From the IMG/VR virus record IMGVR_UViG_3300021963_000023, positions 62,001 through 126,000 of that record: a stretch of DNA of 64,000 bases. One strand, given 5' to 3'. A model generated the notes under the pieces. The model did no database searches. It saw only the letters and a list, made by a program, of their open reading frames with translations, and had not been told where the DNA came from. Each line of letters opens with the position of its first letter. Within the stretch, counting starts at the first letter, position 1. Shown piece after piece: positions 2,872-51,290 of this stretch. The position numbers and the translations under genes were made by a program.

Positions 2872-4890
2872 TTATATAATCTTCGTTTTTATCAATAATT
2901 TTTCTTTAAATGTAATTTTTAGGGGTGTGTTTTCTTTAATATTACCCTTTAAAATTTCATCACTAAGAAAATCTTCACAAAGAGATTGAATAATTCTTTT
3001 GATTGGTCTGGCTCCATACTGCTCATCTTTGTTTCTTTTAGCAATTTCACTCATAACACTAGCATCGAAGGTAATAAAATATTTTTTCTCATTTAAACGA
3101 TCTGTTAAACGATCCATTTCAAGTTTTATAATCTTCTTAATTGCTTCTTCACCTAATGGATTAAATAAAACTATATCATCGATTCTATTCAAGAACTCAG
3201 GATTGAATTGTTGCTTAAGCGATTTCTGAATAATTGTTTTTTTAACTTCATATTGTTGATTCTCACTACTACTAGTATTAAACCCAACACCACCACCAAA
3301 TTCTGATACTTTTTTAGCACCAATATTTGATGTCATAATAATCAATGTATTTGTGAAGTTTACTTTCCTACCAAATGCGTCGGTTAAATGACCTTCGTCT
3401 AGTATTTGTAACAATAAATTAAACACATCCTTGTGCGCCTTTTCTATCTCATCAAATAAAATCACAGAAAACGGATTATTCTTAATTTTTTCTGTTAATT
3501 GACCACCCTCTTCATAACCAACATAACCTGGAGGTGACCCAATCAATCTAGATACCGTATGCTTTTCCATGTACTCACTCATATCAACACGAATAACATT
3601 ATCTTCTGATCCAAAAATCAATTTAGATAATGTTTTTGCTAGATATGTTTTACCAACACCGGTAGAACCAAGAAATATAAAAGAACCAATTGGTTTTTTG
3701 CTATCTTTAATTCCAACCCTATTTCTTCTAATTGATTTAGATATTGTAGTAATCGCTTCGTCTTGGCCAATAACCCTTTCTGATAATTTAACTTCTAAAT
3801 TTATTAAATTAGAAACCTCATTACTATCCATTTTAGAAATTGGGATACCAACCATACTCGATACCATATCATAAACATCATCAACACTAACTGGTATTAA
3901 CGAATCGTTTTGTTTAGCTAACCATTTAGCCTTTTCATCATCTAATTTTTTGATGACCTTTTTTTCTTCGTCTCTTAGTTTTGCGGCTTCTTCATAAACT
4001 TGTTTTTTAACAACTTCATGTTTCTTTTCTTTAATTGTTTCAATTTCTTTTTTTAATTTCTCAATTATTTCAGGGACCTTTGTTACAACACGCTTTTCTG
4101 AACCTAATTCATCTAAAACATCAATAGCTTTATCTGGAAATTGTTTATCTGTCATAAATCTTCCTGATAATCTTACTATTGTTTCAACAACCTCATCACC
4201 ATATGATACTTTATGAAATCCCTCATATGATTTTTTTAAATTTTTTAAAATCTCAACCGTTTCGTCTTCAGTTGGTTCTTTTAAAATAATTTTTTGAAAT
4301 CTTCTTACTAGGGCACCGTCTTTTTCAATATGTTTTTTGAATTCATCAAATGTTGTTGCACCAATACATTGCATTTCACCTCTTGCTAATGCAGGTTTTA
4401 AAATATTAGCCGCATCCATTGAACCAGAAGCATTTCCAGCGCCAACCATCGTATGTATTTCATCAATAAAAACAATAACATCGGGATTTTCCTGTAATTC
4501 ATGTAAAATGGCTTTAATTCTCTCTTCAAATTGACCTCGATATTTTGTACCTGCGACTAACGAAGTTAAGTCAAGTGATACTAATCTTTTATCAATTAGA
4601 TTAGATGGGCAATCTCCCTTAGATATCATTAATGCCAGTTTTTCAACTAATGCAGATTTACCAACACCAGCTTCACCAACAATAATCACATTATTTTTTT
4701 TCTTTCTTGAAAGGATTTGCGCAATTCTTTTAACTTCTTTATCCCTACCAATAACTGGATCAATTTTATCTTCTTCTGCTAACTTAATTAAGTCTCTAGA
4801 AAAATTGTCTAATATTGGTGTGTTTGAATTAACTCTTTTGTTTTTAGGGTTAGTTCTGGGGTTTTCTTCATAACCAAATTCTACTGCCAT
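2872..4890 (-). CDS. clpC: ClpC-like AAA+ chaperone/protease ATPase lacking the N-terminal domain
   Basis: Two AAA modules (GEAGVGKS, GSTGVGKT), GTKYRGQFE and PPGYVGY pore loops, UVR-like M domain, VGF ClpP-docking loop. Confidence 0.9.
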   Translation of the reverse strand: MAVEFGYEENPRTNPKNKRVNSNTPILDNFSRDLIKLAEEDKIDPVIGRDKEVKRIAQILSRKKKNNVIIVGEAGVGKSALVEKLALMISKGDCPSNLIDKRLVSLDLTSLVAGTKYRGQFEERIKAILHELQENPDVIVFIDEIHTMVGAGNASGSMDAANILKPALARGEMQCIGATTFDEFKKHIEKDGALVRRFQKIILKEPTEDETVEILKNLKKSYEGFHKVSYGDEVVETIVRLSGRFMTDKQFPDKAIDVLDELGSEKRVVTKVPEIIEKLKKEIETIKEKKHEVVKKQVYEEAAKLRDEEKKVIKKLDDEKAKWLAKQNDSLIPVSVDDVYDMVSSMVGIPISKMDSNEVSNLINLEVKLSERVIGQDEAITTISKSIRRNRVGIKDSKKPIGSFIFLGSTGVGKTYLAKTLSKLIFGSEDNVIRVDMSEYMEKHTVSRLIGSPPGYVGYEEGGQLTEKIKNNPFSVILFDEIEKAHKDVFNLLLQILDEGHLTDAFGRKVNFTNTLIIMTSNIGAKKVSEFGGGVGFNTSSSENQQYEVKKTIIQKSLKQQFNPEFLNRIDDIVLFNPLGEEAIKKIIKLEMDRLTDRLNEKKYFITFDASVMSEIAKRNKDEQYGARPIKRIIQSLCEDFLSDEILKGNIKENTPLKITFKEKLLIKTKII

Positions 4891-38896: not shown

Positions 38897-41803
38897 ATGC
38901 AAGAGATTATTTCTCAAGAGGTTATCGAAACCTTCTTGAACGGGTCTGACCCCGAAAGATTCATTGTCGGTATCGAATATGACTACCGAAAGAATAAAAT
39001 TTACAAAATCATACAACACCCAGAAAGAGGTAAAATTGTTCTTGAGGACACGTTTACTCCGTTTCTTTGGGCCGGTGACTTATCTGGATTTAACTTCTAT
39101 AATGGAAGTAAAGAAAAGCAGAAAAAGAAAATGGCGGAATATGGTATATTAAGCACCAAACTTGAAACCATGGGTAACGATAGGCTAGAAGATGGGTTAA
39201 AATACCTAGTTAAGAGCACTAATGGTTATCAATCTCTATTGGCTTTTTTTAAGGACGGTGGAATCGATCCTTGGGGTGAAGACTTTAAATCTCAATTTCA
39301 GATATTATCACCAGCCGAACAGTATTTGGTTCAGAAGAAAAAAAGATTGTTTAAGGGTATTGAAGACTATTCCGAAGTTCACCGACTTGTATTTGATATT
39401 GAGACAACTGGTTTAGACCCAGAGACAAGCAATATCATTCTAATTGGAGTTAAAGATAATAGAGGGTATAGTAAATTATTAAACGCATATGGAGATGATG
39501 GTGAAAAAAGATGTATTGAAGAATTTTTTAAAATCATAAAAGAATTAAAGCCATCAATTATTGGTGGGTATAATTCAGCCGCGTTTGACTTACCATTCAT
39601 ATTTAAAAGAGCACAAATTTGTGGGCTGAATATTAGTAAGTTAACTAAGATTTTAAATGATAACCCGCTTAGAATAAAAGAGGGTAAATTAAAATTAGCA
39701 AATGAAGTGGAACCATATACACAGTATGTGTTATGGGGATTTAATATTGTAGATATTGCCCATGCGGTTAGAAGGGCACAAGCAATTAATTCTGAAATTA
39801 AAAGCTGGGGATTGAAATATATTACCACATATCTAGAAAAAGAAAAAGCAAATCGTGTGTATGTTGATGGTGCCTTTATTTCTAAAATATATCTTGAAAA
39901 TCAGAGTTATTATGTTAATCCTAAAACAGGAAAATATAAGAAAATTGGTGATCCAGGTACTGATGACTTGTTAGAAAAATATCCAGGTAAATTTGAAATA
40001 TGGCCTGGCCAAAGAATTGTTGAACAGTATCTTGATGATGACTTATATGAAACTATGGTTGTTGATGAATCATTTAGTCAATCAACATTTTTATTATCTA
40101 AGGTTATCCCAACAACATATGAAAGAATATCGACAATGGGTACAGCAACTCTTTGGAAAATATTAATGCTTGCCTGGTCATATGATAATAATTTAGCAAT
40201 ACCAGCAAAAGATGAAAAACGTCCATTTACTGGAGGGTTATCTCGTTTATTAAATGTGGGTTATGCAAAGAACATTGTTAAGTTTGACTATGCGTCACTT
40301 TATCCATCTATTCAATTGGTCTATGATATATTTCCAGCGTGTGATGTAATGGGAGTTCAAAAATCAATGTTAAAATATTTCCGAGATATTCGTATTAAAT
40401 ATAAACATCTTGCCAGTTCATTAGCAAAAACAAGCCCTGTTGAAGCTGAAATGTATGATAGAAAACAATTACCAATCAAGATTTTTATCAACGCATATTT
40501 TGGTAGTTTATCCGCACCACACGTATTCCCTTGGGGAGAAATGGATTCAGGTGAAACTATTACCTGTATTGGTCGTCAGTGTTTAAGAATGATGATTATG
40601 TTCTATATGAATAAAGGATATAAACCACTTGTAATGGATACTGATGGTGTGAATTTTGAAACACCAGAAGGAATTGCAGAAACAAGATATATTGGTAAAG
40701 GATTAAATGAATTATCTATTGAAGGTAAGGAGTATCATGGAATTGAAGCAGACACCGCAGAATTTAATGATATATTCATGAGGGGTGAAATGGGGTTAGA
40801 TATTGATTATGTTGCTCCGGCATGTATTAATGTGTCTCGTAAGAACTACATTATTAAAATAATTAAAAAGGGAAAGGAGAAGATAAAATTAACCGGTAAT
40901 ACCATTAAATCTAAACGACTTCAGCAATTCGTTGTTGAATTTTTAGATGAGGGGTTTACACATTTACTTAATGGTGACGGTCAATCTTTTTTAAATTTGT
41001 ATTATTCAACAATAAGAAAAATATATAATAAAGAAATACCGTTAGCTAAGATCGCTAGTAAAGCTCGTGTTAAACAAAGTGCTAATGACTATAAAAACCA
41101 TTGTAAGAAAACAACCAAGTCTGGTTCAACAATGTCTCGTCAAGCTCATATGGAATTAATATTAGAAAACGATTATCATGCAACATTGGGTGAAACAATT
41201 TATTATATAAACAACGGTGCAAAAAAAGGAGATGGTGATGTTAAGAAAATAACAAAGCCAACAAAAAAAGAGAAAGAAGATTATTTGCTTAAGCATGGTT
41301 GTGAAATACCAAAAGACTTTATTCAAGTTAATTGCTATATGATTCCTGAAAAAGAATTAGCTAACAATCCTAATATGACTGGTGAATATAATGTTGCTAG
41401 AAATGTTACAACTTTTAATAAAAGAATTGAACCTCTTTTAGTTGTGTTTAAACCAGAGATTAGGGATAACATTTTAATTGAAGACCCAAATGATGAACAA
41501 CAGTTTACGAAAAAACAATCTGAGTTGATTTCAGGGTACCCTCTTAAAGAAGGTGGTCAGGATAGTTTAGATGAAGTTATGACATTATCAGATGGTGAGG
41601 TTTTATTCTGGAACAAAGTGAATAAAGATCCATTCTTTATGTATGTTGAAGATAGTTTAAACAGCGTAGATCAAAAATGGGTTGATTACAATAGAAAGGT
41701 TGTTTCATTCCAAGCAGAAAGTGTTAAAGATATTCAAGATAATGAAATCATTGAGAATAACGGACACGACTATGCATATCACGCGTCAGTATATGTTGAT
41801 TAA
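38897..41803 (+). CDS. family B DNA polymerase
   Basis: Exo I FDIET, Exo II YNSAAFD, DYASLYPS, KIFINAYFG, MDTDG, RKNY. Confidence 0.95.
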   Translation: MQEIISQEVIETFLNGSDPERFIVGIEYDYRKNKIYKIIQHPERGKIVLEDTFTPFLWAGDLSGFNFYNGSKEKQKKKMAEYGILSTKLETMGNDRLEDGLKYLVKSTNGYQSLLAFFKDGGIDPWGEDFKSQFQILSPAEQYLVQKKKRLFKGIEDYSEVHRLVFDIETTGLDPETSNIILIGVKDNRGYSKLLNAYGDDGEKRCIEEFFKIIKELKPSIIGGYNSAAFDLPFIFKRAQICGLNISKLTKILNDNPLRIKEGKLKLANEVEPYTQYVLWGFNIVDIAHAVRRAQAINSEIKSWGLKYITTYLEKEKANRVYVDGAFISKIYLENQSYYVNPKTGKYKKIGDPGTDDLLEKYPGKFEIWPGQRIVEQYLDDDLYETMVVDESFSQSTFLLSKVIPTTYERISTMGTATLWKILMLAWSYDNNLAIPAKDEKRPFTGGLSRLLNVGYAKNIVKFDYASLYPSIQLVYDIFPACDVMGVQKSMLKYFRDIRIKYKHLASSLAKTSPVEAEMYDRKQLPIKIFINAYFGSLSAPHVFPWGEMDSGETITCIGRQCLRMMIMFYMNKGYKPLVMDTDGVNFETPEGIAETRYIGKGLNELSIEGKEYHGIEADTAEFNDIFMRGEMGLDIDYVAPACINVSRKNYIIKIIKKGKEKIKLTGNTIKSKRLQQFVVEFLDEGFTHLLNGDGQSFLNLYYSTIRKIYNKEIPLAKIASKARVKQSANDYKNHCKKTTKSGSTMSRQAHMELILENDYHATLGETIYYINNGAKKGDGDVKKITKPTKKEKEDYLLKHGCEIPKDFIQVNCYMIPEKELANNPNMTGEYNVARNVTTFNKRIEPLLVVFKPEIRDNILIEDPNDEQQFTKKQSELISGYPLKEGGQDSLDEVMTLSDGEVLFWNKVNKDPFFMYVEDSLNSVDQKWVDYNRKVVSFQAESVKDIQDNEIIENNGHDYAYHASVYVD

Positions 41804-46792: not shown

Positions 46793-49630
46793 ATGGCAAA
46801 TTCAAACAGAGTATTCGTGTCTCCGGGTGTGTACACATCAGAGAAGGATCTAACATTCGTAGCGCAGAGCGTTGGAGTTACAACATTGGGTCTAGTGGGT
46901 GAGACTTTAAAAGGTCCGGCATTTGAACCAATTTTGATTTCTAATTTCGACGAATTTAAAGTATATTTTGGTACTACCAGTCCAGCAAAGTACGGAGATG
47001 GTAACCCAAAATATGAGCTTCCATATGTAGCTAAATCATATTTACAAGAATCAAATCAATTATTTGTAACTAGAGTTTTAGGATTAACTGGCTACAAACC
47101 AGGAAAGACCTATGGAATTAAAACATTAGGAGGTATTACTGTTGATCTAACAAGTACCCCAACAACAAGCGGTAGTACATTAACACCTACATCTTTAACA
47201 ACAATAACAGGTGCAACATTTTATGCTGAACTTTCAGGTAAAACATCAACAGAAGGTACATCAATTACTGATTACTTAATTGCTGGTTCAAATTCTAATG
47301 GGGCATATGCTCTTAACGAATGGTTTACAATTGGTACGGTGCCAGCATCTGCAACAAGTGGATTAACTGGAACACAGTTAGTATCACCTATTGGAAATGC
47401 TAACAAGAACTGGTATAACAATTACTTTGTAAAAAGTGGTTCTACCGATTCAACAATTCATGGTGTATATTCATACCTTTTTGTTTTAACAGGTGCATCA
47501 TCATTTAGTGTTACAAGATACAAGTATTCAGCGTCATTAAATGCTGACTATGCTGGTAGAACTGTATGTTTATTAAGATCTAGGGGTTCATACGTATCAA
47601 ACGCACTTGTACACAGAGTAACTGGTGCAACTGCCGTTCAAATTACGGGGGCAACTATTGATACTAATCCATTGGGTGAATTTAATTTAGCTATTACCGA
47701 TGTTGCTTCGATTGTAAACAACTTTACGTGTTCTTTCGACACATCTTCTTCAAAATATATCACCAAAATACTTGGTACTGATGTTTTTGATAAAGAAAAG
47801 GTTGAATATCCAATTTATGTTCACGAAGTATATCCAAATTTAATAAACAACTTGTTTGAACAAGGTTTAATTAGAGGTTTAAGTACAGATGAACAAGTTT
47901 TAACAGAGGTGGATAATTTTGTTACACAATGGGATATGGCAGGGTCATCAACAGTAGTTTCTGAAGTTAGAGGCGGGAAGGTTTTTGATTTATTCAGTTT
48001 CTTAACTGTATCAGATGGTGATACTTCTAACTATGAAGTTAAAATAACAATTTCAAATATTGACATTGACACAGCAGAATTTGATATTCTTGTTCGTGAT
48101 TTTAATGATACCGATACTAATCAAGTTGTTTTGGAGAAATTCACAAGATGTACAATGAATCCAGATTTACCAGGATATGTTGGTAGAAAGGTTGGTACAT
48201 CAGATGGAGAGTATGAATTAAGATCTAAGTATATTATGCTTGTTTTAGCTGAGGAGCATCCAACAGACGCATTCCCAGCTGGGTTCAAGGGAGTAACAAC
48301 AAGATCTGAAATAGGTGAAATTCTTTATAAAACAAAATACTATGATGCAGGTGATGTATTATACTATGACGCTAGCGGAAATCCAGTTACCACAAATGGT
48401 GATAAAGTTAAAAAAGTAACTTTAGGATTTTCAACAGATGGTAATTTTATATATGATAGAGACATGTTAAAGTTTAAGGGTAAGGTAGCAGCCGGATCAA
48501 CATTTGGTTTCCACTTATCAACAAATGCGTCATCAATCACTGGAACAACTGGTAGTAAATTATTTAAAACAACAGCATATGATTTAGAAGGAATTAACAA
48601 AGGTAAATTAGCAACTACATCATATAGAAAATTCACTCTACCATTATTTGGTGGTTTTGATGGTTGGGACATTTATAGAAATACAAGAACAAATGGTGAC
48701 GGGTATGTATTTGGTAAAACAACGTATATAAGTGGTCACACTGGAAACGGTGGTGTATTCAGCAGTACAGTTGGAAACTCAGATTACTATGCATACTTAC
48801 AAGCTATTGAAACATATGCAAATCCTGAAGCAGTAGATATTAACATATTTGCAACACCAGGTATTGATTGGAATAATCATAGTTCATTAGTTAATCAAGG
48901 AATTGATATTATTGAAAATGATAGAGCGGATTCATTATACATTATCAACTCACCTAACTATACAACTGCTGATGAAACAATTTCATCTTTAGATGATTTA
49001 GGTCTTGATAGTAACTATTCTGCAACATATTGGCCTTGGATTCAAGTAAGAGATACAGATAATGCAACACAGCTTTTTATACCGCCAACAGGTGAAGTAT
49101 TAAAGAACATAGCATTGACTGATAACGTTTCTTATCCTTGGTTTGCTGTGGCGGGTTACTCAAGAGGTCTTGTTAACGCAATAAAAGCACAAAAGAAATT
49201 AACTCTTGATGAAAGAGATAATCTTTATAAAGCCAGAATTAACCCAATCGCAACTTTCTCTGATACAGGTACTATTATCTGGGGTAACAAAACGTTACAA
49301 GTTAGAGAATCAGCATTAGATAGAATCAACGTAAGAAGATTGTTATTGAGAGCTAGAAAGTTAATCTCTGCAGTAGCTGTAAGATTGTTATTTGAACAAA
49401 ATGACGAACAAGTTAGACAAGAGTTCTTAAGATTGGTAAATCCAATTCTTGAGTCAATTAAGAAAGAAAGAGGTTTATATGACTTCCGTGTAAGTGTATC
49501 TAACGATCCAGAGGATATTGATGCAAACACATTAAGAGGTAAAATATACATAAAACCAACAAGAGCATTGGAATTCATTGATGTTGAATTCATTATTACT
49601 CCAACGGGTGCTTCTTTTGAAAATATCTAA
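46793..49630 (+). CDS. tail sheath protein (gp18-like)
   Basis: FVSPGVYTSEKD, YWPW, WFAVAGYSRG, RINPI, WGNKTL, RINVRRL. Confidence 0.96.
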   Translation: MANSNRVFVSPGVYTSEKDLTFVAQSVGVTTLGLVGETLKGPAFEPILISNFDEFKVYFGTTSPAKYGDGNPKYELPYVAKSYLQESNQLFVTRVLGLTGYKPGKTYGIKTLGGITVDLTSTPTTSGSTLTPTSLTTITGATFYAELSGKTSTEGTSITDYLIAGSNSNGAYALNEWFTIGTVPASATSGLTGTQLVSPIGNANKNWYNNYFVKSGSTDSTIHGVYSYLFVLTGASSFSVTRYKYSASLNADYAGRTVCLLRSRGSYVSNALVHRVTGATAVQITGATIDTNPLGEFNLAITDVASIVNNFTCSFDTSSSKYITKILGTDVFDKEKVEYPIYVHEVYPNLINNLFEQGLIRGLSTDEQVLTEVDNFVTQWDMAGSSTVVSEVRGGKVFDLFSFLTVSDGDTSNYEVKITISNIDIDTAEFDILVRDFNDTDTNQVVLEKFTRCTMNPDLPGYVGRKVGTSDGEYELRSKYIMLVLAEEHPTDAFPAGFKGVTTRSEIGEILYKTKYYDAGDVLYYDASGNPVTTNGDKVKKVTLGFSTDGNFIYDRDMLKFKGKVAAGSTFGFHLSTNASSITGTTGSKLFKTTAYDLEGINKGKLATTSYRKFTLPLFGGFDGWDIYRNTRTNGDGYVFGKTTYISGHTGNGGVFSSTVGNSDYYAYLQAIETYANPEAVDINIFATPGIDWNNHSSLVNQGIDIIENDRADSLYIINSPNYTTADETISSLDDLGLDSNYSATYWPWIQVRDTDNATQLFIPPTGEVLKNIALTDNVSYPWFAVAGYSRGLVNAIKAQKKLTLDERDNLYKARINPIATFSDTGTIIWGNKTLQVRESALDRINVRRLLLRARKLISAVAVRLLFEQNDEQVRQEFLRLVNPILESIKKERGLYDFRVSVSNDPEDIDANTLRGKIYIKPTRALEFIDVEFIITPTGASFENI

Positions 49631-49647
49631 TATTACAATAAAATAAG

Positions 49648-49678
49648 AATGGGGATGGCTAAAAACCTCCCCATTTTT
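49648..49678 (+). terminator. intrinsic terminator after sheath
   Basis: AATGGGGA/TCCCCATT stem followed by Ts. Confidence 0.75.
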
Positions 49679-49680
49679 GT

Positions 49681-49808
49681 ATAGTATATTGAATATCAGT
49701 AAATTAGTTAATTAGAATAAAAGAATATAAGTAAATCAGAATATCAGAAATATTAGTATATTAGTACATTAGAATATTAGTATTTTAGAATTTTAGTAAG
49801 TTAGTAGC
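49681..49808. repeat. tandem array of 16 degenerate 8-mers (TTAGWAWA)
   Basis: Parsed by hand: atagtata ttgaata tcagtaaa ttagttaa ttagaata aaagaata taagtaaa tcagaata tcagaaata ttagtata ttagtaca ttagaata ttagtatt ttagaatt ttagtaag ttagtagc. Confidence 0.85.
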
Positions 49809-49921
49809 AAAAAGCTAAGGAAAAAAAACGAGAAAAACAACTATTTTACAAAATAAATTTTATTTCACATATTGATATATTTATAGGAAAGAAATAAACA
49901 CAAAATTATAATACAAAAACA

Positions 49922-50410
49922 ATGGCAGATTTATTAATGAAAATGCCGGTTCCATATGAACCGAAACGCAAAAATAGGTTTATCTTAAGATTTCCATCAT
50001 CTTTAGGTATTAACGAATGGTATGTAACATCTACTGCTCGTCCTAGTGCTAAAATTAACTCAACAGAAATTCCATTTTTAAATACTTCAACATACGTAGC
50101 AGGTAGATTTACATGGGACCCAATCAAAGTTACTTTTAAAGACCCAATTGGTCCTTCAGCATCTCAGGCTCTTATGGAATGGTTTCGCTTACACGCAGAA
50201 TCGGTTACAGGTAGAATGGGCTACGCCGCAGGTTACAAGAAAAACGTAGAATTAGAAATGTTAGACCCAACAGGAGTTGTAGTTGAGAAATGGATAATGG
50301 AAGGTTGTTTCTTAACTAGTTTAAACTTTGGTGATTTGAACTACTCTCAAGATGAATTAGCAACAATTGATGCTGAATTGAGAATGGATAGATGTATCCA
50401 AGTATACTAA
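49922..50410 (+). CDS. tail tube protein (gp19-like)
   Basis: EPKRKNRF, YVAGRFTWDPI.VTF.D, YKKN..L..LDP.G..VEKW; follows sheath. Confidence 0.9.
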   Translation: MADLLMKMPVPYEPKRKNRFILRFPSSLGINEWYVTSTARPSAKINSTEIPFLNTSTYVAGRFTWDPIKVTFKDPIGPSASQALMEWFRLHAESVTGRMGYAAGYKKNVELEMLDPTGVVVEKWIMEGCFLTSLNFGDLNYSQDELATIDAELRMDRCIQVY

Positions 50411-50435
50411 TATTACTTTTAAAATAGATTTATTT

Positions 50436-50468
50436 AAATCCATCATCCTTTTAGGTTGGTGGATTTTT
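50436..50468 (+). terminator. intrinsic terminator after tube gene
   Basis: AAATCCATCA/TGGTGGATTT stem followed by Ts. Confidence 0.7.
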
Positions 50469-50484
50469 CGTTCCATGTGGAACC
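50469..50484. promoter_or_regulatory. parS-like palindrome
   Basis: cGTTCCAtGTGGAACc, 13/16 match to TGTTCCACGTGGAACA, intergenic. Confidence 0.5.
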
Positions 50485-50549
50485 TTTTTCATTACCAATT
50501 GATTTTCTAATAAATTATACTTATATTAAAAGAAACAAATTAATTTAAT

Positions 50550-51290
50550 ATGGATAATATAAACCCAATGGTTGCATATGATGTGGTATCCTTACCATCT
50601 CAAGGTGTACACTATTCCAACGGAAAGAAAACATTAAGAGTAGCTTATCTAACGGCTGCAGATGAAAATATTCTAATGTCCCCCAATTTAATACAATCCG
50701 AAACGGTTGTTGATGAATTATTAAAAAGAAAAATATTGGATAAAGACCTTAGTTATGAGGATCTTGTTGAGGAAGATAAACAAGCTATTTTAATATTTTT
50801 AAGAAATACAGCATTTGGTACAGAATATACATTAACATTAACCGATCCAGCAACTAAGAAATCTTTTGAGGGAATACTAGATTTATCTGTATTAAAGGTT
50901 AAAGATTTTAAATTAGTTGCTGATTCAAATGGCGAATATTCATACATATTACCAATGTCTAAGAAAAATATAACATTTAACTTCTTAACAAACACACAAG
51001 AAAAAGAATTACAGAACATTAAAGAATCAAGTGGATCATCGGTTTCTCCAGTTAATACTAAAAAACTTGAGATGATGATTAAATCTATTGATGGTCAACG
51101 AGATCAAATGGCAATATATCAATTTATTCAAAATCTACCAATCAAAGATTCACAAGATTTTAAAAAATTCGTATCAGAAAATAAACCAGGTTTAGACCTA
51201 ATAGTTGATGTAATCGCCCCGTCAGGAGAAAAAGTCCCAGTTTTGGTTGACTTTGGGGTGGAGTTTTTTCGTCCCTTCTACGGAATATAA
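50550..51290 (+). CDS. tail assembly chaperone / baseplate hub assembly protein (gp26-like)
   Basis: VSLPSQG.HY, LTAADENIL, D..AILIFLR, ends FFRP; between tube and tape measure. Confidence 0.75.
   Translation: MDNINPMVAYDVVSLPSQGVHYSNGKKTLRVAYLTAADENILMSPNLIQSETVVDELLKRKILDKDLSYEDLVEEDKQAILIFLRNTAFGTEYTLTLTDPATKKSFEGILDLSVLKVKDFKLVADSNGEYSYILPMSKKNITFNFLTNTQEKELQNIKESSGSSVSPVNTKKLEMMIKSIDGQRDQMAIYQFIQNLPIKDSQDFKKFVSENKPGLDLIVDVIAPSGEKVPVLVDFGVEFFRPFYGI

Follow-up and report, generated by a model that had tools for sequence, protein, structure and literature searches.

Why would a jumbo phage that encodes no detectable ParB carry, in the gap between two tail genes, a short palindrome resembling the bacterial chromosome centromere, parS? 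We examined this question for the sequence CGTTCCATGTGGAACC, which lies at positions 50469-50484 of a 64,000-nucleotide stretch (hereafter the window) of the virus record IMGVR_UViG_3300021963_000023. The record is a 251,149-bp IMG/VR contig (G000) with 32% GC, estimated to be 75% complete, from an uncultured freshwater myovirus-like jumbo phage with T4-like tail genes. A first-pass annotation, made from the sequence alone, described the palindrome as a chromosomal-type parS in a phage spacer lacking parA and parB, and suggested that the phage may recruit host ParB and SMC to position or segregate its DNA, or titrate ParB away from the host chromosome. The observation itself was confirmed, although the site is not a perfect palindrome. 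Its interpretation found partial support: a parS-type site conserved among relatives withstood each computational test that had been proposed for it, while ParB binding was not assayed and the suggested roles are untested.

Results

The parS-like site lies between a terminator and a baseplate-hub gene

The site is in a 139-bp spacer between a tail tube gene (49922-50410, plus strand, 162 aa; phrog_4542, E 2.8e-29, with Pfam Phage_T4_gp19 just below its cut-off) and a T4 baseplate-hub-like gene (50550-51290, plus strand, 246 aa; phrog_150, E 9e-10, Pfam T4_baseplate, 26.5 bits). Upstream is a tail sheath gene (46793-49630, plus strand, 945 aa; phrog_23, E 1.6e-62, Pfam Phage_sheath_1 and Phage_sheath_1C), followed by a terminator hairpin with a T-run (49648-49678, plus strand). 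The spacer begins with the intrinsic terminator of the tube gene (50436-50468, plus strand), a 13-pair hairpin followed by a U-run; RNA folding of 50405-50520 gave -23 kcal/mol with a z score of -3.05. The parS-like site follows directly, and 14 bp downstream of it begins a sigma-70-like promoter match, TTGATT-17-TATATT (50499-50527, plus strand, 9 of 12), which is conserved as a block in the close clade but is a consensus match only.

The site comprises two 6-bp arms, GTTCCA and TGGAAC, around a non-palindromic TG. It has 3 mismatches to TGTTNCACGTGNAACA, at positions 1, 8 and 16, of which position 8 is a C-to-T change in the central CpG of the CACGTG core in the left half-site, while the right half-site, GTTCCAC, is intact. 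Taken alone this is close to chance. The window has 7 sites with 3 mismatches or fewer against 2.9 +/- 1.6 expected, and the whole record has 26, two of them with only 2 mismatches. With 11 of 14 specified positions (13/16) matching the chromosomal consensus tGTTNCACGTGNAACa and 26 equally good matches in the genome, the window's copy does not by itself decide whether it is a chromosomal-type parS. Nor are half-sites enriched in the record, where GTTCCAC/GTGGAAC occurs 47 times against about 38 expected.

Relatives conserve the core as a DNA sequence

Chance was rejected only by comparison with relatives, whose conservation of the site had been put forward as a condition for the parS reading. 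A scan of viral contigs with the tube protein returned 80 loci with 84-99% identical tube proteins, and the two spacers flanking the tube gene were extracted from each (loci are numbered with the prefix L). The spacers have diverged strongly, yet a 14-bp core, GTTCCACGTGGAAC (50470-50483 in the window), is present within 2 mismatches in about 60 loci. Across 42 unique contexts the consensus is tGTTCCACGTGGAACc, with a mean top-base frequency of 0.88 in the 16-mer against 0.47-0.57 in the 40-bp flanks. Loci L041 and L045 read TGTTCCACGTGGAACA, matching parS 16/16, and L007-L010 and L057 read TGTTCCACGTGAAAC followed by C or G, which is 15/16 to the B. subtilis-type site. L001 and L004, with tube proteins 99% identical to the window's, have the intact core, CGTTCCACGTGGAACC. 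Among 25 unique 16-mers, positions 2-7 and 11-15 are at least 88% conserved, and variation concentrates at positions 1 and 16, at position 12 (G or A), and at the central CpG (ACGT to ATGT or ACAT, 10 of the 25) and position 10. Positions 1, 16 and 12 are free or weakly constrained in known parS sites (PMC7022226, PMC4368675).

The site has moved between two spacers. On a tube and hub tree, the clade containing the window (25 rows, support 100/100) has the core in the tube-hub spacer, directly after the terminator or about 35 bp further on, and in one subclade inside the terminator loop. On the other side of the tree it lies about 230-280 bp upstream of the tube start codon, directly behind the sheath terminator. 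Two clades and one single lineage have no copy near the tube gene. In three large related records (G001-G003) the good copy is single. In L064, L065, L066 and L069 an extra half-site, TGTTCCAC, lies directly 5' of the full site in the sheath-tube spacer (TGTTCCACA followed by TGTTCCACG...), a tandem arrangement that fits a binder reading GTTCCAC.

The possibility that the palindrome acts only as a second RNA hairpin had been named in advance as grounds for rejecting a parS, and the comparison spoke against it. Seven of the 25 variants break a stem pair, and the only compensatory change produces another legal parS variant. The small hairpin, at -5.8 kcal/mol in the window, does not form in the orthologues of L007 and L048 (-1.2 and -0.8 kcal/mol, no better than shuffles), and the T-run after the site is not conserved. 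The element thus lacks the conserved structure of an intrinsic terminator.

No phage partition genes were detected

Profile searches found no ParB_N domain in G000 or in five related records (G001-G005) totalling about 0.8 Mb, and no HTH_ParB domain or AAA_31-type ParA in G000, in agreement with the first-pass annotation's statement that the window lacks parA and parB. The same searches scored in 10-14 of the 14 control genomes. All phage records are incomplete (29-75% by CheckV), so a ParB in the missing parts is not excluded. The neighbours of the site are sheath, tube and hub genes, and there is no parA-parB operon beside it as in a plasmid or phage ParABS cassette. Because the question concerns a DNA site, the large protein searches and structure and complex prediction were not used.

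The candidate host family carries the same site

The only bacterial assembly among 185,579 species representatives that encodes a relative of the tube protein is a Flavobacteriaceae MAG (G006), which carries a 248-kb phage-like contig. This MAG has a canonical parA-parB operon, whose ParB has the ParB_N, HTH_ParB and ParB_C domains, and two exact TGTTCCACGTGGAACA sites flanking mnmG/gidA. Of 61 Flavobacteriaceae genomes sampled, 53 have 1-3 exact TGTTNCACGTGNAACA sites, mostly the C/G variant with the C/A variant second, usually as a pair about 1.9 kb apart, while the reversed control pattern never occurs. All 61 have ParB. Because the motif occurs only 1-3 times per genome, at the centromere, ParB is the only plausible host protein to bind the phage copy. 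The sequence and its cognate ParB are present in this family, but whether the family is the host is inferred rather than observed, which leaves undecided whether the phage site equals the parS of its actual host.

The Bacteroidetes host proposed by the first-pass annotation is supported only indirectly, by co-binning in this one MAG, low GC content and the near absence of Shine-Dalgarno-like motifs, found upstream of 4% of 188 ORFs against a 7.6% background, with A-rich leaders. Bacteroidota largely lack Shine-Dalgarno-led initiation. A CRISPR-spacer-style search of 20 kb of the window against 401 Flavobacteriaceae genomes gave only short marginal hits, consistent with chance, and none of the six places examined had repeats around it; one further assembly (G138) holds a small sheath-like fragment. 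The window has no tRNA genes to inform on the host. Against cultured phages, blastn found nothing, and tblastn with the sheath gave only distant hits, to Microcystis phage Mel-JY01 at 34% and to Flavobacterium phages at 37% over the C-terminus; the nearest isolates share only 29-37% sheath identity. Near-identical DNA is present in freshwater and lake metagenomes, and in two runs labelled marine, from 17 studies. Contigs from RNA libraries lie on the sheath and tube ORFs and not on 50342-50609, which fits termination before the site, but contigs do not show RNA ends and no conclusion was drawn from them.

The exact parS 16-mer recurs in viral contigs

The exact 16-mer TGTTCCACGTGGAACA occurs in at least 120 IMG/VR contigs, whereas its reversed, composition-matched palindrome occurs in 3, an enrichment of at least 40-fold. 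Of the 80 contigs listed (L084-L163), only 2 belong to this phage family; the rest span 23-70% GC, and several again place the site right behind a terminator or in a hairpin loop. Of 30 such records, 27 lack ParB_N, including 4 of 5 complete genomes with terminal repeats. A second, recurrent phage group (L096, L113, L151, L155-L157 and L163; for example L151 534-549) of 64-105 kb and 34-39% GC, some with terminal repeats and none with ParB_N, keeps a perfect parS in a conserved context. Its only hit to a cultured phage is a weak one, to a short stretch of Bacteroides phage Versailles.

Discussion

We favor, with moderate confidence, the view that this site is the phage's copy of a host-type chromosomal parS, at which host ParB loads onto phage DNA. 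The sequence, its conservation, its identity in relatives with the parS of the candidate host family and the lack of a detectable phage ParB or ParA rest on the analysis itself, whereas ParB binding, clamp loading and any downstream role are our inference, there being no binding or functional data of any kind. In this model, host ParB dimers recognize the GTTCCAC half-sites, bind CTP, close into clamps and slide onto the flanking phage DNA, forming a partition-type complex. The site is consistently placed behind strong terminators of late structural genes, either sheath or tube, where read-through transcription would not sweep ParB off, and it would be undisturbed early in infection or in a stalled infection, when late genes are silent. 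The most likely consequence would be that the phage genome rides the host ParABS machinery, and possibly SMC, for positioning or inheritance during carrier-state or starvation-stalled infection; host ParB-dependent positioning was not examined here, as no cultured phage-host pair exists. A chromosomal par operon plus a single parS site stabilizes otherwise unstable plasmids (PMC7022226, PMC4368675). Less likely within the same binding model are local control of the adjacent tube and hub genes, or titration of host ParB by many replicating phage copies.

Some observations sit less comfortably with a free centromere. The site has stayed within about 800 bp of the tube gene in every lineage, which hints at a locus-bound, regulatory role, although its varying distance to promoters fits a position-independent cis site better than an operator. 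It is also dispensable, as one nearly whole 248-kb relative (contig C1 of G006) has no good site anywhere. Chromosomal parS sites usually lie near an origin, often in a cluster; here there is one good copy near the tube gene plus one candidate inside a gene 71 kb away, and GC skew follows gene strand and shows no origin signal. Origin proximity is thus lacking, but it is usual for parS rather than defining.

The window's own copy is probably a lower-affinity version. In P. aeruginosa, ParB binds natural variants such as ...GGAACC, ...ACAT... and ...CGAG... with graded affinity, and an intact CACGTG core is important for high affinity (PMC4368675). C at position 16, as in the window, is found in the fully functional sites parS1 and parS4, whereas C at position 1 occurs in the weak site parS6. 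The best analogue for the window's degenerate copy is found in the low-affinity parS5-10 and half-parS sites of P. aeruginosa, imperfect sites with one intact GTTCCAC arm that ParB binds with lower affinity and that are not used for segregation (PMC7022226, PMC4368675), although those lie on the host chromosome and act in nucleoid organization or gene regulation.

Other explanations deserve weighing. The site could be the operator of a phage-encoded DNA-binding protein, not a detectable ParB, that regulates the tube or hub genes, its likeness to parS being coincidental or arising because that protein also targets the host centromere. The site does flank the tube gene on one side or the other and lies just upstream of promoter-like elements, and the same spacers are dense in protein-binding candidates, among them the conserved palindromes TTGATAATCAA and TTGACAAAGTCAA and lineage-specific 8-mer arrays. 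We nonetheless consider this unlikely. A chance match of a conserved 14-16 bp palindrome to the exact parS of the candidate host family is very improbable, and the site's relation to the nearest promoter-like element differs between lineages: overlapping it, about 14 bp upstream, inside a terminator loop, or more than 200 bp from the tube promoter. Promoter-like hexamers are at chance density here (14 found, 11.8 expected). The 8-mer arrays change unit between lineages while this site does not, as expected if its binder is not co-evolving with each phage lineage.

It is likewise doubtful, though possible, that in this genome the site is a decaying relic of a parS that works in relatives. The three mismatches, one in the core, would allow it, since in P. 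aeruginosa core mismatches give the lowest ParB affinity and two-mismatch sites cannot support segregation (PMC4368675); CpG is depleted in the genome (observed/expected 0.67), which fits CpG decay, and whole clades have lost the site. However, the ATGT or ACAT center recurs in 10 of 25 unique 16-mers, in lineages whose flanks have diverged, while the other 13 core positions stay intact, which argues for continued selection on the variant, and one full half-site is retained, which some ParBs bind (PMC7022226). Restriction avoidance as the cause of the central changes is unsupported, as ACGT is not depleted (0.94) and CACGTG is too rare to judge. That the palindrome serves only as a backup terminator, with a 5-bp stem, 4-nt loop and U5, is very unlikely: a terminator scan does pick it up and it is followed by CUUUUUC, but it is the sequence and not the pairing that is conserved, and in some lineages it lies inside the loop of the main terminator or in a different spacer.

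As a sequence, the family's site is a chromosomal-type parS that shares the 14-bp core but lies on a phage genome, apparently as a single copy, next to tail genes and behind terminators. As a system it is closest to phi29, which has no ParB of its own, carries five parS sites and uses host Spo0J to get its genome into the spore (Meijer et al. 2005, as cited in PMC2731898). The present family shares with phi29 a host-type parS on a genome without a detectable ParB. However, phi29 is a 19-kb podovirus of a spore former, whereas here the phage exceeds 250 kb, the host is probably a non-sporulating Flavobacteriaceae, there are one or perhaps two sites per genome, and no outcome has been observed. 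The partition cassettes of P1 (parABS) and N15 (sopABC) also place a centromere-like site on an extrachromosomal phage genome, and the N15 sites are dispersed and lie near late promoters, but those elements encode their own ParA and ParB and use element-specific centromeres. The concept is therefore known from phi29, the only documented case we found, and what is new is the phage group, the host group, the single terminator-shielded site next to tail genes and the apparent breadth; our literature search found no report of host-type parS in jumbo phages or in phages of Bacteroidota, though an empty search is not proof of absence.

If host ParB does load here, a large and globally distributed group of freshwater jumbo phages uses the host's chromosome-segregation machinery through a 14-16 bp site. 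Together with the excess of the exact 16-mer in viral contigs that mostly lack ParB, this suggests a general mechanism, which would bear on pseudolysogeny and carrier states, phage genome organization and interference with host chromosome segregation. A parS motif could also become a cheap marker for host prediction, since its presence implies a host that has ParB. It is tempting to speculate, though only tentatively, that mimicry of the host centromere is a widespread and overlooked strategy, in which many phages without a ParB, across hosts from 23% to 70% GC, carry a canonical parS, often tucked behind a terminator, on which host ParB-CTP clamps load. In this family it would amount to a plasmid-like persistence in nutrient-poor waters, during stalled or carrier-state infection, that needs no partition genes.

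Additional features of the locus and related genomes

A possible second copy, CGTTCCACATGGAACC, lies at record position 41402-41417 (locus L204, 1402-1417), about 71 kb upstream of the first site and about 21 kb before the start of the window, inside a calcineurin-like phosphoesterase gene. The peptide it encodes, RFHVER, is found only in the few homologues that carry the DNA motif: L205 encodes the same peptide, L206 and L207 have a flipped center and a Val-to-Met change, and L235 is only 65% identical overall but has the same DNA at this spot. About 70 other homologues have unrelated residues there. This pattern suggests selection on the DNA rather than on the protein, and the sequence may be a second, in-gene parS. 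Two-mismatch hits in G002 and G003 resembled copies of this site but lie in unrelated coding regions and were dropped.

The 8-mer array noted by the first-pass annotation as about 660 bp away is a tandem array of 8-nt period (ATTAGTAY-like, 13.5 copies) at 49682-49806 (plus strand), between the sheath terminator and the tube promoter, about 660-790 bp from the parS-like site and not shown to belong to it. Relatives keep an array at the same place, but the unit is ATTAGTA in the window's clade, ACTGGAAC or ACTAGTAT in the clade with the site behind the sheath terminator, and CTGGACC or TTGGTCC in a clade without the site, which suggests a lineage-specific DNA-binding protein. The ACTGGAAC unit shares TGGAAC with the parS half-site. 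Of the further conserved palindromes, TTGATAATCAA lies upstream of the parS-like site in part of the window's clade (for example L007, about 3545-3560), and TTGACAAAGTCAA and a block GCAAAAAGCTA..GGAAAAAAAA lie upstream of the tube promoter-like TTGATATATTTATA across most lineages (window about 49810-49900).

Some relatives (L078 3032-4618, and L033) carry a 528-aa ORF inserted between the tube and hub genes, with DUF7487 and a weak Mom-like match, and L061 and L070 keep only a 281-bp remnant of its start. It looks like a mobile or optional gene at the place where the parS-like site sits in the window. Across the whole record, CATG is strongly under-represented (observed/expected 0.53) and GATC is at 0.76, which, with the CpG depletion, may reflect restriction avoidance. 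Lastly, a terminator-like palindrome on the minus strand at 49946-49964, inside the start of the tube gene (CCGGTTCCATATGAACCGA), resembles the site, but it encodes the conserved peptide PVPYEP and is most likely a coding coincidence.
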